DNA of 64,000 nt from Selaginella moellendorffii (taxonomy: Eukaryota > Plantae > Lycopodiophyta): assembly GCF_000143415.4 (NCBI RefSeq), contig NW_003314267.1, positions 1,810,100-1,874,099 on the forward strand. Reading direction: 5' to 3'. Within the stretch, counting starts at the first letter, position 1. Each line of letters starts with the position of its first letter. The position numbers were made by a program, and so were the translations under genes. Shown here piece after piece: positions 9,806 through 59,968 of the stretch. The notes beneath the pieces were generated by a model. That model did no database searches and had not been told where the DNA came from. It worked only from the letters and a program-made list of their open reading frames with translations.

Positions 9806-10840
9806 ATGGAGCGCAGGGGAAGGCGCTCGCCGGATCGGGAGCGCGGCGAGAGAGGGGACAGGCACGGCAGGCGCTACGAGGGCGAAGGATTTGGCAGCGA
9901 CCGCAGAGAGAGGCGCTATGATTCTGGCGACGATTTCGATCGCGGGGACAGGAGGTTTTTCCAGCGTGAGGAAGGTAGAGATTTCCGGCGTGAGAATGTA
10001 GGGAGAAGAGGGGATGGAGCAGCAGCAGCAAGTCAGGAGCTTCCGGAGCTCTACTCGATTTGTAGGGGACGAGTTCACTCGGTGAAACCCTTTGGTTTGT
10101 TTGTTCGTCTAGAAGGCTATCGAGCTCACGGGCTCGTCCATCTCTCGCAAGTGAGCAATCACGAGGTCACGCAGCGGGAAGACTCGGACGAGGTGAAAAT
10201 GCAAGCTTTGGCAGCGATTGCCGGGCAAGGAGAGGAGATATGGGTGAAGATTATCGCCGTGAGACGAGAGGAAGATGGAAGTGTGAAGATCGGTTGCTCG
10301 ATGAAACTTGTTGGGCAGACCGATGGAAGAGACTTGGATCCAAACAATCTCCAGGCCGAGCTCAACGAATCAAGGCCATCTCGTCCTGCTCGTTCCAAAG
10401 TGAGATTTTTATCTTTTCTCTTCGTAGTTCTGATGTATTTGGGAGTGTGGCAGGTTACTCTTGATGCTGTTTACAACGTTTCTTGCTCGCGGTGCGGCGG
10501 TCACGGCCACTTGAAATCTGAATGCTACGCCACCGGTGACAAAACTTACGAGCTGCTTCCAGAGGAAGCTCTGGAGGATTCAGTGCCACAGCCATTGACA
10601 CAGCCATCGACAGTGCTTGCGGAAGAAACTCTAGACAAGGAGAAGAACAGGCACAGCGCATCCAAGTCGAGCAAGAAACGAAGCCATCTCCCAGACAGCG
10701 TTACTACTGTGGAAGAAGCCAAAGCTCTCATCGCGAGCCTCAAGGACGAGAAGAAGAAAAAGAAGGAGAAAAGAGAAAGCAAGCGCCACCATAGCAAGCA
10801 TCACAAGAAGCGGAGGAAAGAGGAAGAATCAGCGCACTAA
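9806..10840 (+). CDS. S1 RNA-binding plus CCHC zinc-knuckle protein (pNO40/ZCCHC17-like)
   Basis: ELPELYSICRGRVHSVKPFGLFV...GLVHLSQVS (S1 domain), GRDLDPNN, CSRCGGHGHLKSEC and a Lys-rich tail. Probable 54-nt in-frame intron at 10400-10453. Confidence 0.85.
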   Translation: MERRGRRSPDRERGERGDRHGRRYEGEGFGSDRRERRYDSGDDFDRGDRRFFQREEGRDFRRENVGRRGDGAAAASQELPELYSICRGRVHSVKPFGLFVRLEGYRAHGLVHLSQVSNHEVTQREDSDEVKMQALAAIAGQGEEIWVKIIAVRREEDGSVKIGCSMKLVGQTDGRDLDPNNLQAELNESRPSRPARSKVRFLSFLFVVLMYLGVWQVTLDAVYNVSCSRCGGHGHLKSECYATGDKTYELLPEEALEDSVPQPLTQPSTVLAEETLDKEKNRHSASKSSKKRSHLPDSVTTVEEAKALIASLKDEKKKKKEKRESKRHHSKHHKKRRKEEESAH

Positions 10841-40889: not shown

Positions 40890-42489
40890 TCCCACTTTAG
40901 ATGAGGGAGACCCCACTAGGTAGCATGAGATTCGGGCAGCATGCCCGGTTTTTGTATTAGTCCCTACGGGACATTGGGGAATGTACATACACGTTTCACC
41001 AAACCGTTGTACCAATGCAATGCCGTCCTTTGGAGACACGTGGGAAACTCACGCAAATGTCGAACATCATCCCAAGAATGATATGTGGCAATCACCGTAA
41101 AGTGATCAAACCAATGGTACACATCATCCCCAAGATTCCCGCGAAAGAACTCCGGCCGAACGAGAGGATTGGCACCAAGAGCAGGAGGAGTTGTACCATG
41201 TGCTGTGAATGCCGCCATCAACTGAGTTTGGTTGTTCAATTGCAAGTGCATAGCATCAAGTAATTGTACCAACTTCTGCTCCAGAGTCAAAGGAGGAGAT
41301 TGCTAATCTACCATAGATACGAATGAAAAAGAAAGAGCAAAAGAAGAGAAATGACAAAAAGCTAGAAGGAAATGGTAGATTTAGACAATGCAAAAAGCTA
41401 GATCTAAACCAAAATCCTAAAGGAAAGAACAAAAGAAAGAAAATGGAAAAAGCTAGATCTAAATTGAAATCCCAAATCCAAGCACTCCCCAGGGACAATC
41501 AAAGGTGCCCCTCAACTCCACCAATGTGGGTGCATGGAATATGAAAAGGGAATACAGAAATGTGCATATCAATTAACCCAAAAACCCTAGTTTATATACA
41601 GAAGCGAGTGGTCTGGATTGAAACCAATCTGATGGCTACCAAAATCCCACTATGCTAATATTAATATACGGCATCGTAGCCGTACACTTGGCCCTCACAA
41701 ATTAATTTTTTCATTAAAAATTTCCAAATAAGTAGCAAGATAAAATATAATAGAAGTTCAAATTAAATCTAAATATAATGATCTAAACTTAAACATGATG
41801 ACAATAAATATAAAATATAATCCATTATAAAAAAAGTCATTTATGCATATAGCACAAGCTATGCCATTTTAAATATTTTGAGAAAAACTACTACAGACAA
41901 CTATTATTTAAATGATAATAGTTATTGTTATCCAAAATGCATATGTGATTCTAAAAGCATCATTATTCTATAAAAGTCAAATGGTGAATTTAAGTGATTT
42001 ATAATTTGTAATATTGTATATACTTAGAATATATTTGGATATTTTGGGAGATTCTACCATCTAATCTTGTATTTATAACTTATAAACTCCTAGTATATTC
42101 TAGTTTATTCTAAAAAAACAATTGTGTTTATAAATTATAAACATATAATAATTACTTTTCGGGCTTAAAATTAATTCTATAAGTGATGCTCCAACACCTT
42201 AAAATATTAAAAAGTAAGAGTTGAACTATAAACACTCACAACATTGTTATTATAAAGTTCTTTAGTTATTATAAGTCCAACTACATGGTTATTTAGAGTT
42301 TATTGTGCAATATAATATACAAATGTGTAGAAGTTTTAATTGAATTACCCATTAATAAATTAGATTAATAAATAACACTAAACATGAACATACTGGTAAA
42401 GAATTTAAGTTATTTAAATTATATCTCATTTATTCTACACTAAAAAATATTCTTACCATACATAAAAAAAAAGTGCTCTGGTCAGAGCT

Positions 42490-55576: not shown

Positions 55577-56939
55577 ACATATAATTCTCTTAAAACATAA
55601 AATTTTTTTGGTTTGCTTAATTGAAACTGTAGGGTAGTGGATATATCTAGAATAGGCTTAGATATTCTAGGATATTCTACCATTTAATAGTTGTTATTCA
55701 TTTAGGTTGTATTTATAATTTATAAACTTTTTTACACACTTGTTAGTATATTCTTATTTATTCTACCATCAAATGGGTGATATGCAATGAGCTTAATCTT
55801 TTTTTATAAATTATAAAAATGTTTGTAATTATTGATTAATTATATTATTAGATTAATAGTTCAATAATAATGACACTACTATTAAGAAAACCAAATGTTG
55901 CTGCATGTAGCACACAGAGTTGTTATTCTTAACATAGATAGTTATTGTGATTTCTATTAAATTCTATTATCTGTATTCAATTTTTTAAAATGTGCTATTA
56001 TATCAAGCCCATTATAGGTAGATTTTAAACACAAAAAGATATATATTTCATAGAATATTTATTGTTAATATATTTAATATTTTCAATTTAGATTAGATAT
56101 ATAACTACAATGAAAAATATATTAGGTTCTTCTTATAAAAGGTATATAAAAAGCACTTTTAAAAATTTTAGTGGTTTTGTTAAGGCAATAGATACACAAT
56201 AGCTTTGCCAAGGTACACAGTGGCTTTTAGCACCATGGTTCCCATACTAAGGCCATGGATCTAGGCAGCCTTGAGTGCCATAGGTGACATGGTTACATTG
56301 AGCTAGCTCTAATCCCTTAAGGGATGTTAGGAATTTAAATGTTTGGTGTGTTTAGTTATTTACATTTGTGAAGAATGTAACTAAACCTTAAATCCAATCT
56401 AAACTAAGGAGGGGAATTGAAAGAGAGTTTATGAACCCATGGAGGAATGATTAACATTTTGTTGCTTGTGTAGTGAGTGGTTAAATCCAAGTAGAATTAA
56501 GTAAGAGCTAGTATAATAGATATGAACTTTGGCAAAGAAACTTAATTAAAACCAAAATAAAGGTGGTCAGACAAATGAGGTAAGTTGGCAAATTAAAAAA
56601 TGAAAACTTATGATTTATATCATAGTGTTATGTTAGTTAAAGAACATCATCAAGGGTGCTAGGGCAAATGTATACACAGGCCTTACAAGATCTTGATAAA
56701 GTGTTGTTCATGACATGCCTAACTTAATGCACTCATGGGGTGATTTTGATATTTGCATGAGTTTCTTGTTTTCAAAACATAGCATTGTAGTGGTACAATA
56801 GTTTGCCTGTGGCCACTTTTTTTGATGGAAACCTTCTAAACATTTTCAAGTATGTATTTGGACATGTTAATTATTATACAGATGAAGTATATTTTCTTCA
56901 TCAAGGGACTGTTTGAGTCCATTATGCATTTTTGTGTTT

Positions 56940-57380: not shown

Positions 57381-57760
57381 CTTTATTCATAAATAAACAA
57401 AGAAATAATATTGTATGATAACTTAATTGTCCTACTTTCTAACATAACCTAAAGGCAAATATTGCTAATATAAATTTAAACTTATAATAAAATTTAGTAT
57501 TAATTTATGAAAGAGATTTATAAGTTAAATTTTATTGCATCAGGACCTAATAAACAGTGTTTTTGCACCTACCACCTGAGACAAGTCGTGGAACTCGAAA
57601 TTACTTGCCTGTATGACCTGCCAATGCAGATGGAATGACCTGTCAGTGGCTTTAAATGCTCACGCGGAGATTTGCTCTTCACCGCGTGCAAGTCAAACTC
57701 ACGAGAGTTTTAACTTGGATGCACAGCTTGTCTGAAGAATTATCTTTTGAGGGCCCATTC

Positions 57761-58134
57761 ATGTCGTCTCCAACTGTAGCAGCACAAAAAAACCTCCTCG
57801 TTGCCACGCTTGTGCTTCTTCTCGTAGCGATTTCTAGCGGGAACACCAACAGCAAATCACCCGTGGTATGTATGAAAATCTTCCAGCTTACCTAAGATGT
57901 TTGATGGTTTTCCAGAGCAAAGGCAGGATGTTTCGCCAAGACTATCCCGATGTCGATCCAAGCCCTCGGTCATGGGTACCAGTGAGACCGGGAAAAGTCT
58001 CCTACAAAAGGCTCGTTCCTAGCCCTCCTCCACCTCCAAAAAGTTCGCTCTCGCCTCCGCCGGCACCAAGTCCTCTCCCGGAACCACAGGGACGTCGGAG
58101 GACCAAAAGGACGTTGCCAAGCTCACGAAATTGA
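57761..58134 (+). CDS. Small secreted peptide precursor, TWS1/CIF-like (2 exons; intron 57866-57915)
   Basis: Spliced MSSPTVAAQKNLLVATLVLLLVAISSGNTNSKSPV-SKGRMFRQDYPDVDPSPRSWVPVRPGKVSYKRLVPSPPPPPK...*: signal peptide, DY motif, Pro-rich tail. Phase-0 GTATGT..TTCCAG 50-nt intron. Confidence 0.72.
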
Positions 58135-59968
58135 CGTCTTCACCAGCCAAGTGTATCAGAGTTTCCAGTCGTAAAGCCAACGAGTGATTGCAGAGCCAGC
58201 CTCGCTCCTGACTTGTTCCAATGGATTTTTTGGAAATTCTAAGTCGAAGTTTCCTTCTTCCGGCTTGAATTACACCTAGTCATGCTGCGACACCTCGAAG
58301 AGCTTGCCTGCACAGTCGTCTTCCGGCTTGAAAGATACCGAGTCCACCTCAAAGAGCTTGTCTGGACTGTCGTATCCTTGGTTGTATCCGACCTCCGAGA
58401 TATCAAACCGCCAGCCGACCTGAGTTCTTCTTGATCTGAGTTCTTCGCAGTCGAATGGCCGTCGTCTTCAAGCTGTGAATCGTTTCCATCTATCGAATGC
58501 AGTCCCAATGTATCCTCGTGACTTCAAAGCTCAATTTTTCTTCTTCCGGAATATAGCGACGAGAGTAAGTCCTGGAACAGCTGGCCTGGACTCTGTCTCG
58601 ATACTCTGGCTTGAGAGATCTACATTCCGGAGCCGTCCAGCACTCCATGCCGATCTTGGCATCTCCTTGACGTTCCAGTTTTTCAGGTCTGAATCTCCGT
58701 CGGCTGTGAATGACTCTCAACATGCCCCGCCCAATCTGCATTATTGTCATCCGGAACTCCACGCTAATTCCGTCATCTCCTGGATATTCCAGTTCTTCAA
58801 AGTGAGAATTTCTTTTGTCTTCAAGCAGCAAGGGACTTCAAGTGGAAGTAGTTTATGGCCTTTTTGCTCGCACGAGATGGCCGGATTAACGACTCTAGGA
58901 GGCCTGGAAAATAAAATTTCCGGATTTCTAGATTTTGGGAGAATCTGTTTTTCCCAAGTGCCCAATGAACTTTTGTACCATTAAAGAATTCTCAACTGGA
59001 TACAAAGAATCACAACATGATGTGAATATCGTTTCTTTATACATGGTTTTTTAATATTTTTTTTATATGTTTTTCATGTAACTCTCGCAAAAACTATATA
59101 GTTTGAAGAAAATGAAACTAGGTGAACCAATTATGCATATAGTTTGCATATACATGTTTTGACATGATTTTATCAAAGCATAGTTATAAAACTAGAAATG
59201 AATCTAGTTATCAGAAGTATATTATATATTTAATAATTTGCTGTGTGTTGCATGCAATAAAGTTTGGTTTGCTTATTAATATTTCTTCTTAGTTATTAAT
59301 CATATTGATCAATTGAAAATTTCATAGTTATGAACATATTTATAATTTGGATTAATCTTAAACATTAGAATAAACTAGAATATACTAGAAAGTGTTTAGG
59401 AATTTTATAAATTATAAATACATGATTAATATAAATAAATAAAAACCATTAGATGATAGAATATCCAAGAATATTTTAGGTATATCCACTACTATATTTA
59501 AGCAAACAAAAAATGAACCTACTTTTTACTGTAGTTAAAATATGATTATTGCCTAAACTTTGAAAGACACTTCATTTATTTTATTTGAAGGGCTGAGATT
59601 AAAGATGCCCTTCATGTTGCAAGGTTCAAATAAAAAATTACACTTCTTAAGAAAGGTAGAAAAATATTTTAACTATCAAAACAATATGTATCAATTAATT
59701 ACTTGTGATGATAAATCAATTTAGGATAACAACATTAAAATTTCTGTATGGTTATTATGATTATTCTTATAGCATGGTAATAAAAGACATAATAAAATTT
59801 TCCATCCAAATCTGTTAATTATTGTAGAACATTTAAATCACCATTAAACACATATAACTCTACCACCAAATTTAGCCATTAATTACCCTTTTATGGCAAT
59901 AAATATATGGTTATGCATGGGAGCATTATATATTTACATATATGCAAATTTGTTTTTTTGGTTTTAAG

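Follow-up and report, generated by a model that had tools for sequence, protein, structure and literature searches.

A two-exon gene of Selaginella moellendorffii encodes a small secreted proline-rich protein of 107 aa, as judged by comparing its exon translations with a database protein, and a paralogous locus has kept the gene while its Asp-Tyr (DY) core has changed rapidly. The gene structure, a hydrophobic N-terminus, a skeleton of DY and prolines, coding constraint beyond the core and rapid divergence at alternating positions within it can all be read from the DNA. Our favoured interpretation, held tentatively and with somewhat less than even confidence, is that the gene, recently duplicated and diverging fastest in its core, encodes a CIF/TWS1-type pro-peptide that is secreted, probably sulfated on tyrosine and extended at its C-terminus. 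Throughout, the window means the whole 64,000-nucleotide stretch of DNA that was analysed; the positions of the features are collected in Table 1.

Gene structure and annotation

Exons 1 and 2 were searched separately, and the joined product was taken only as the database protein P0001 (RefSeq XP_024526377.1, 107 aa), to which both exon translations are exactly identical. The locus of XP_024526377.1 (L003) coincides base for base with the window sequence, which belongs to scaffold GL377571.1, and the sequence cluster of the protein consists of the RefSeq entry alone. In RefSeq it is labelled 'splicing factor 3B subunit 4-like', a misnomer that evidently stems from the proline-rich tail. An earlier note on this DNA had proposed that the ORF track splits one gene in two and that removal of a 50-nt intron restores a product of ~107 aa; its coordinates are right, and that product is identical to XP_024526377.1. 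The motifs quoted there (KGRMFRQ, DYPDVDPSPRSWVPVRPG and a Pro-rich tail) are likewise all found in the exon 2 product. The gene is 'hidden', as the note had it, in that it is absent from the ORF track, but it had already been annotated as XP_024526377.1.

The N-region of the product is short and holds one Lys; it is followed in exon 1 by a 13-residue hydrophobic run (best 11-residue window, Kyte-Doolittle 3.32) with SSG next to it. On hydropathy, this stretch is predicted to be a typical signal peptide, and the same exon is kept in the paralog, which bears out the signal peptide placed at the N-terminus by the earlier note. A short Ser/Asn/Lys-rich linker connects the signal peptide to SKGRMFRQ, after which comes the only DY of the precursor (residues 44-45 in the 107-aa product, present in 3/3 alleles). 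Asp stands at +2 from Tyr45 in all alleles and, in the window copy, also at +4. Sixty-two residues follow the DY, so the C-terminal extension measures about 40 residues; its Pro-rich stretch carries one SPPPPP, and its polybasic end is conserved. The Atlas model of the product is disordered (pTM 0.20).

The start codon may lie further upstream than annotated. The 121-aa RefSeq models of the paralog begin at an ATG homologous to 57719, and this ATG may be the true start in place of 57761, giving a product of 121 aa. Between the paralogs, the 14 additional codons differ at 5/42 bases and 3/14 residues (residues counted by hand), a level of divergence like that of unconstrained or neutral sequence. 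If the upstream TTTAAAT is used as a promoter element, the ATG at 57719 would fall inside the mRNA.

Paralogous locus and coding constraint

A word-index protein search with exon 2 matched only the RefSeq model and its paralog, P0002, whose cluster also holds P0005. P0002 and P0005 represent two haplotypes of one other locus, L001 (GL377618.1) and L002 (GL377572.1), with identical neighbouring genes. For both haplotypes the 121-aa models are misnamed 'formin-like protein 2' in RefSeq, another misnomer driven by proline content. When compared with each other (10001-10416), L001 and L002 show two residue differences, namely an Arg to Gly change in the propeptide, caused by one base change in the SKGRMFRQ region of the L002 haplotype, and an Arg to Lys change in the polybasic tail; their DY cores are identical.

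Intron, reading frame, signal peptide, tail and the stretch leading up to DY are all preserved in the paralog. Its intron (L001 10148-10197) has the same length and boundaries as that of the window copy and differs from it at 5/50 bases, which is the neutral rate. Across the exons and intron (371 nt), not a single indel separates the two loci (P(0) about 0.05); the non-coding flanks differ at 36/435 aligned bases (8.3%) and contain four indel events. Replacement changes are scarce relative to silent ones in exon 1 (pN 0.026, pS 0.175; Fisher p=0.014) and in the coding sequence outside the DY core as a whole (pN 0.035, pS 0.13; p=0.013). Judged by these substitution counts, the coding sequence outside the core is under purifying selection.

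The same comparison bears on splicing. If exon 1 is left unspliced, its frame reaches a stop within 10 codons, inside the intron, in both paralogs; moreover, the exon-2 frame stays open for 16 codons of the intron, and these have acquired four replacement changes and one silent change (hand count), as would be the case for neutral sequence. Given the stop in the unspliced frame and the neutral intron, splicing to exon 2 is the only arrangement that accounts for the constraint on the signal-peptide exon. On this comparative evidence, the two-exon locus is a genuine spliced gene, beyond a chance pair of ORFs.

Table 1. Positions in the window of the peptide gene, its parts and the features around it (+, forward strand; -, reverse strand)
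Feature	Positions	Strand	Remarks
Inverted repeat, left arm	55605..55765	.	72% identity over 167 bp to right arm
Segment shared with paralogous locus	57589..58890	.	1.3 kb; blastn against L001/L002 9860-11294
TTTAAAT, possible TATA-like element	57651..57657	+	Read directly; identical in L001; putative promoter role
In-frame upstream ATG and 14 codons	57719..57760	+	Alternative start or 5′ UTR; lies in ORF 57656..57895
Exon 1	57761..57865	+	ATG at 57761; 35 codons; signal peptide and start of propeptide; P0001 residues 1-35
Intron	57866..57915	+	50 nt, phase 0, GT..AG, GTATGT...TTTTCCAG
Exon 2	57916..58134	+	72 codons plus stop (58132-58134); end of propeptide, DY core, Pro-rich basic tail; P0001 residues 36-107
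SKGRMFRQ, candidate N-terminal processing region	57916..57939	+	Octapeptide preceding DY; 0/24 bases differ from L001; putative processing
DY core, candidate sulfated mature peptide	57940..58029	+	30 codons; probably first 21-24 residues (57940-58011)
Pro-rich, then polybasic C-terminal extension (..GRRRTKRT..)	58030..58131	+	pN 0.055, pS 0.10 against paralog
Broken fragment of paralog's convergent neighbour gene, 3′ part	58135..58890	-	Short broken ORFs only; no gene called in L003
Inverted repeat, right arm	59366..59513	.	Diverged; pairs with left arm

Divergence of the DY core

Within the 30 codons of the DY core, 18/90 bases differ between the paralogs, i.e. 20% against 8.3% in non-coding sequence, which is 2.4 times higher (p=0.002). 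Of these differences, 16 alter the amino acid and two are silent (pN 0.24, pS 0.084), and core pN stands above both the non-coding divergence (p=0.0003) and pN elsewhere in the gene (p=6e-6). The replacements fall between the invariant residues D, Y, D4, V5, P7, P9, R10, W12, P14, R16, P17 and G18, such that the skeleton DYxDVxPxPRxWxPxRPG is kept in the paralogs. When replacement and silent sites within the core alone were compared, the difference was not significant as a sign of positive selection (p=0.14), and the core may instead have undergone a local rise in divergence without selection, e.g. through gene conversion from an unseen third copy.

In paralogous peptide hormones, the mature peptide is usually kept while the remainder of the precursor varies. 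The pattern recovered here from the alignment of the two loci, a fast core in an otherwise constrained precursor, is the reverse, and the fast-diverging core is a new observation of this analysis. It points to core side chains that diversify on a fixed backbone, which would be compatible with a ligand bound largely through its main chain, as in GSO1-CIF2.

Comparison with TWS1, CIF and other sulfopeptides

For comparison, we used the mature Arabidopsis CIF1-4 and TWS1 peptide sequences and their precursor lengths of 76-102 aa (PMC11534595). The window gene resembles this family in encoding a small precursor with an N-terminal signal peptide (107 aa, or 121 aa from the upstream ATG) and in having Asp-Tyr, the minimal TPST motif, at the start of the candidate peptide, where sulfation is predicted. 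As in CIF1-4, DY is followed by four residues and then PxP, with Pro7 and Pro9 present in both paralogs; in TWS1, by contrast, the central prolines are Pro8 and Pro10, and the window gene has one residue fewer between DY and PxP. Once a single gap is placed after DY, a hand count gives 8/22 identities to TWS1 (TWISTED SEED1, At5g01075, a ligand of GSO1/GSO2) for the window copy and 9/22 for the paralog. The ..VDPxP.. block of TWS1 is matched, as are the basic residue and PG that follow seven residues on, and the paralog reads PGPI, as TWS1 does. Ungapped, the core shares 7/21 residues with CIF1, including PSPR and Pro14 (hand count); the basic residue at position 10 is common to CIF1-3 and Pro14 to CIF1/2.

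The extension behind the peptide is a further likeness to TWS1, in which it is removed by ALE1/SBT1.8, and to CIF4, in which SBT5.4 removes it, whereas the peptides of CIF1/2 end the precursor. Unlike that of TWS1, however, the extension of the window gene runs to about 40 residues, is more Pro-rich and has a polybasic end; a His at the C-terminal cleavage point is missing, as is the His-Gly cleavage site. The host plant, moreover, is seedless, and homology to TWS1 is not statistically detectable.

The core also departs from CIF1-CIF4, the Casparian strip integrity factors that act as ligands of GSO1/SGN3 and GSO2, in that Gly3 and a ..IPN or ..PH end are missing and a Trp12 is conserved in the spikemoss paralogs. 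A C-terminal His/Asn at about position 21-23 defines CIF peptides (PMC7007523); exon 2 encodes no His at all and a single Asn, which stands at the very end (peptide position 64) and is replaced by Thr in the paralog. Position 3 is Pro in the window copy and Arg in the paralog, rather than the Gly of CIF1-4 or the Asn of TWS1. Trp12 and Arg10/Arg16, which are invariant in the paralogs, have no counterpart in TWS1. GSO1 binds CIF2 mostly via main-chain atoms (PMC7007523), and divergent sulfopeptides can therefore be ligands.

The earlier note had called the peptide TWS1/CIF-like. The DY, Pro7/Pro9, the VDPxP and PG blocks and the extension agree with that description, but the His/Asn end and Gly/Asn3 are absent and no homologue was found outside the species. 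How far the motif rises above random DY-containing, Pro-rich sequence was gauged with composition-matched shuffles in which DY was held fixed and the residues after it were shuffled. Pro7 plus Pro9, a pattern fixed beforehand, was reached by 6-9% of shuffles, or by 11-18% if either register was allowed. The published query DYxxxxPxPPLxxPxPF (PMC8462819), also fixed beforehand, is matched at 3/7 non-DY positions, as in 8-19% of shuffles. Rarer arrangements were chosen only after the match had been seen: P7, P9, a basic residue at 10 and P14 (0.2-0.5% of shuffles), and the spacing of PxP, seven residues and PG (0.13-0.24%). Since the patterns fixed beforehand are attained by 6-19% of shuffles and the rarer spacings are post hoc, the motif neither clearly passes nor clearly fails against random sequence.

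Other sulfopeptide families fit less well. Precursors of PSY, RGF/GLV and PSK share with the window gene a secretory route and a DY, and DYxD is common to PSY1 only; however, the gene lacks the ..N..H.P signature of PSY (DYxDPxxNxxHxP), the 13-residue length and ..HN end of RGF and the YIYTQ of PSK. Because these signatures are absent, CIF/TWS1 is, in terms of sequence, the best resemblance among known sulfopeptide families. The window gene is a plausible candidate member of that family.

Database searches

A Pfam scan of both exons returned no family, and a two-sequence profile run with HMMER against 1.84 billion representatives found no homologue outside S. moellendorffii. Two extra HMMER matches, P0003 and P0004, were rejected as relatives, as they are internally repetitive proteins whose E values are inflated by the repeats. 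In a PDB search with exon 2 and both 24-residue cores, no CIF2 chain was returned at E<=10, a result to be read with the proviso that the presence there of the modified CIF2 21-mer is unconfirmed, and chance matches scored above any CIF2 chain. The best PDB match, to the yeast alpha-factor repeats (W..L.LKPG...Y), amounts to about 5 bits per repeat and was taken as chance. The core segment at 57970-58011, W-V-P-V-R-P-G-K-V-S-Y-K-R, is similar to alpha-factor W-L-Q-L-K-P-G-Q-P-M-Y-K-R, the dibasic site after it included.

In the ESM Atlas, the nearest clusters were unnamed small streptophyte proteins at 0.88-0.89, under the 0.9 level that counts, and the core peptides did not occur in the paper texts searched. 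Among 169,000 six-frame residues of the DNA examined, DY....P.P occurred once besides the two real genes. This second match, at 13351 on the forward strand, has a DYG start like canonical CIFs, but no ORF with a start codon contains it, and it was set aside as chance.

Alternative explanations for the peptide

Kinship with CIF/TWS1 has to be weighed against a separate origin, in which the product would be a lycophyte-specific, tyrosine-sulfated or otherwise processed secreted peptide that acts on another receptor and has converged on DY in a Pro-rich context. Detectable homology does not extend beyond S. moellendorffii, the terminal His/Asn and the Gly3/Asn3 are absent, the patterns set beforehand are common among shuffles (6-19%), the invariant Trp12 and Arg10/Arg16 lack TWS1 counterparts, and a rapidly changing core would suit a fast-evolving ligand, for example in defence or reproduction. 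We nevertheless consider this explanation unlikely, if one to be taken seriously, given that CIF/TWS1 is the sole one of the four known DY/sulfopeptide families to show any fit, and that the post hoc pattern of PxP, seven residues and PG after DY was reproduced in only 0.13-0.24% of shuffles.

The tail invites a different reading, namely a hydroxyproline-rich structural or glycosylated wall protein (extensin/AGP-like) with no part in signalling and with an incidental DY. There is, however, only one short SPn block, with neither repeated extensin modules nor Tyr cross-link motifs; the eight residues before DY are unchanged relative to L001, with the one Arg to Gly change in L002; and a DY and core skeleton that stay fixed while the intervening positions change fast would be unexpected for a low-complexity wall protein. 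A wall protein thus appears clearly improbable, for all that SPPPPP and AP/SP dipeptides in the tail, a RefSeq name drawn from Pro-rich proteins and the disordered Atlas model (pTM 0.20) are in keeping with one.

Origin of the window copy

The whole small gene lies in the 1.3-kb segment shared with the paralogous locus, and the two loci cease to be homologous beyond 57589 on one side and 58890 on the other. A neighbour gene lies tail-to-tail with the paralog (L001 10422-12164; 407/343-aa product), the window contains a broken fragment homologous to its 3′ part, and the wider gene neighbourhoods of the two copies differ. The broken fragment and the differing neighbourhoods make it probable that the window copy arose from the paralogous locus by a recent duplication of 1.3 kb of DNA.

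The gene sits in a 3.9-kb AT-rich stretch bracketed by inverted repeat arms, and a copy related to the arms is present at 42012-42113. No target-site duplication was found at the arms (55605-55765 and 59366-59513). Pack-MULE elements have long, similar terminal inverted repeats and a 9-11-bp target-site duplication around captured gene fragments. At the present locus, a captured gene fragment is present, the arms are 72% identical and a target-site duplication was not found, and capture of the gene by a transposon (Pack-MULE-like or MITE-flanked) is possible, though weakly supported by these features.

The window copy might accordingly be a recent transduplicate, possibly carried by a transposon, that is silent or decaying, with function residing in the parental L001/L002. 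This would explain why homology breaks off at 57589/58890 and takes in a broken piece of the paralog's neighbour gene, why the surroundings are AT-rich with inverted repeat arms on either side, and why pN in the rest of the coding sequence (0.035) reaches roughly half of the neutral value of 0.083, a level to be expected if one copy drifted while the other was constrained; that the protein cluster holds the RefSeq entry alone also fits. Decay is nonetheless quite unlikely in our estimation: the gene retains an intact ORF, start and splice sites, with 0 indels in 371 nt (P(0) about 0.05), the excess of changes in the core consists mainly of replacements (16 vs 2) and lies above the neutral rate, for which drift alone is insufficient, and the supposed carrier has arms only 72% identical and no target-site duplication that we could find. 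That the locus is non-coding, a gene-prediction artefact over a stretch rich in Pro codons, is very improbable, as reading frame, splice sites and signal peptide are preserved in three alleles at two loci and silent changes significantly exceed replacements outside the core, although the want of relatives outside S. moellendorffii is what an artefact would give.

Proposed processing and perception

For a pro-peptide of CIF/TWS1 type, we infer sulfation, processing, receptor and biological role as follows. The signal peptide would direct the precursor to the ER and probably be cleaved off behind SSG, at about residue 27; Tyr45, which lies in the only DY and has Asp at -1, +2 and +4, would be sulfated by tyrosylprotein sulfotransferase in the Golgi. 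Prolines may be hydroxylated. By analogy with TWS1 and CIF4, subtilases would cut just before DY and strip off the Pro-rich polybasic C-terminal extension, releasing a sulfopeptide of CIF/TWS1 type of about 21-24 residues. The peptide would then be bound by a GSO/PEPR-clade LRR receptor kinase and would signal breaches in an extracellular barrier, whether the cuticle, the Casparian strip or the spore wall.

Evolutionary context

According to Furumizu et al. (2021, PMC8462819), S. moellendorffii possesses TPST as well as representatives of all seven LRR-RLK XI clades, two of them in the GSO/PEPR clade; on the basis of sequence patterns, CIF/TWS1-related candidates are proposed in that study for non-seed plants down to bryophytes, alongside GSO-clade receptors. 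The putative MpCIF of that study is comparable to the window gene, being a DY-and-prolines pattern match in a small secreted precursor from a species with GSO-clade receptors and TPST, and it too lacks the terminal His/Asn. The window gene, however, fits just three of the seven non-DY fixed positions of the query pattern used there. The earlier note had argued for a barrier-surveillance module older than seeds; the idea itself had already been put forward, since that same study proposed both the non-seed candidates and the GSO-clade receptors, and it is less new than was stated.

BLAST-based surveys trace CIF/TWS1 peptides back no further than seed plants, with CIFs found only from gymnosperms on (PMC11855783, PMC13074997), and gymnosperm CIF homologues group with TWS1 (PMC11855783). 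Lycophytes have Casparian strips (PMC11855783), and CIF3/CIF4-GSO signalling coordinates tapetum and pollen wall formation (PMC9295805), which makes the cuticle, the endodermis or the spore wall plausible targets in a seedless plant.

A broader scenario, which we regard as possible but doubtful, is that a TWS1-type pro-ligand, i.e. a DY sulfopeptide kept inactive by an extension, already served a GSO-clade receptor in the common ancestor of lycophytes and seed plants, and that in Selaginella the ligand was duplicated and its side chains positively selected while the skeleton of DY, Pro and Arg-Pro-Gly was held. The window gene is so far a candidate for such a ligand, already annotated under a misleading name; together with its paralog, it provides two naturally divergent candidate peptides on one skeleton. 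All land plants have GSO-clade receptors and TPST. If the scenario is true, 'leak-detector' surveillance of barriers predates seeds. Proof that a GSO receptor binds a lycophyte ligand would date the barrier-integrity module and reveal whether the first barrier that it served was the cuticle, the endodermis or the spore wall.
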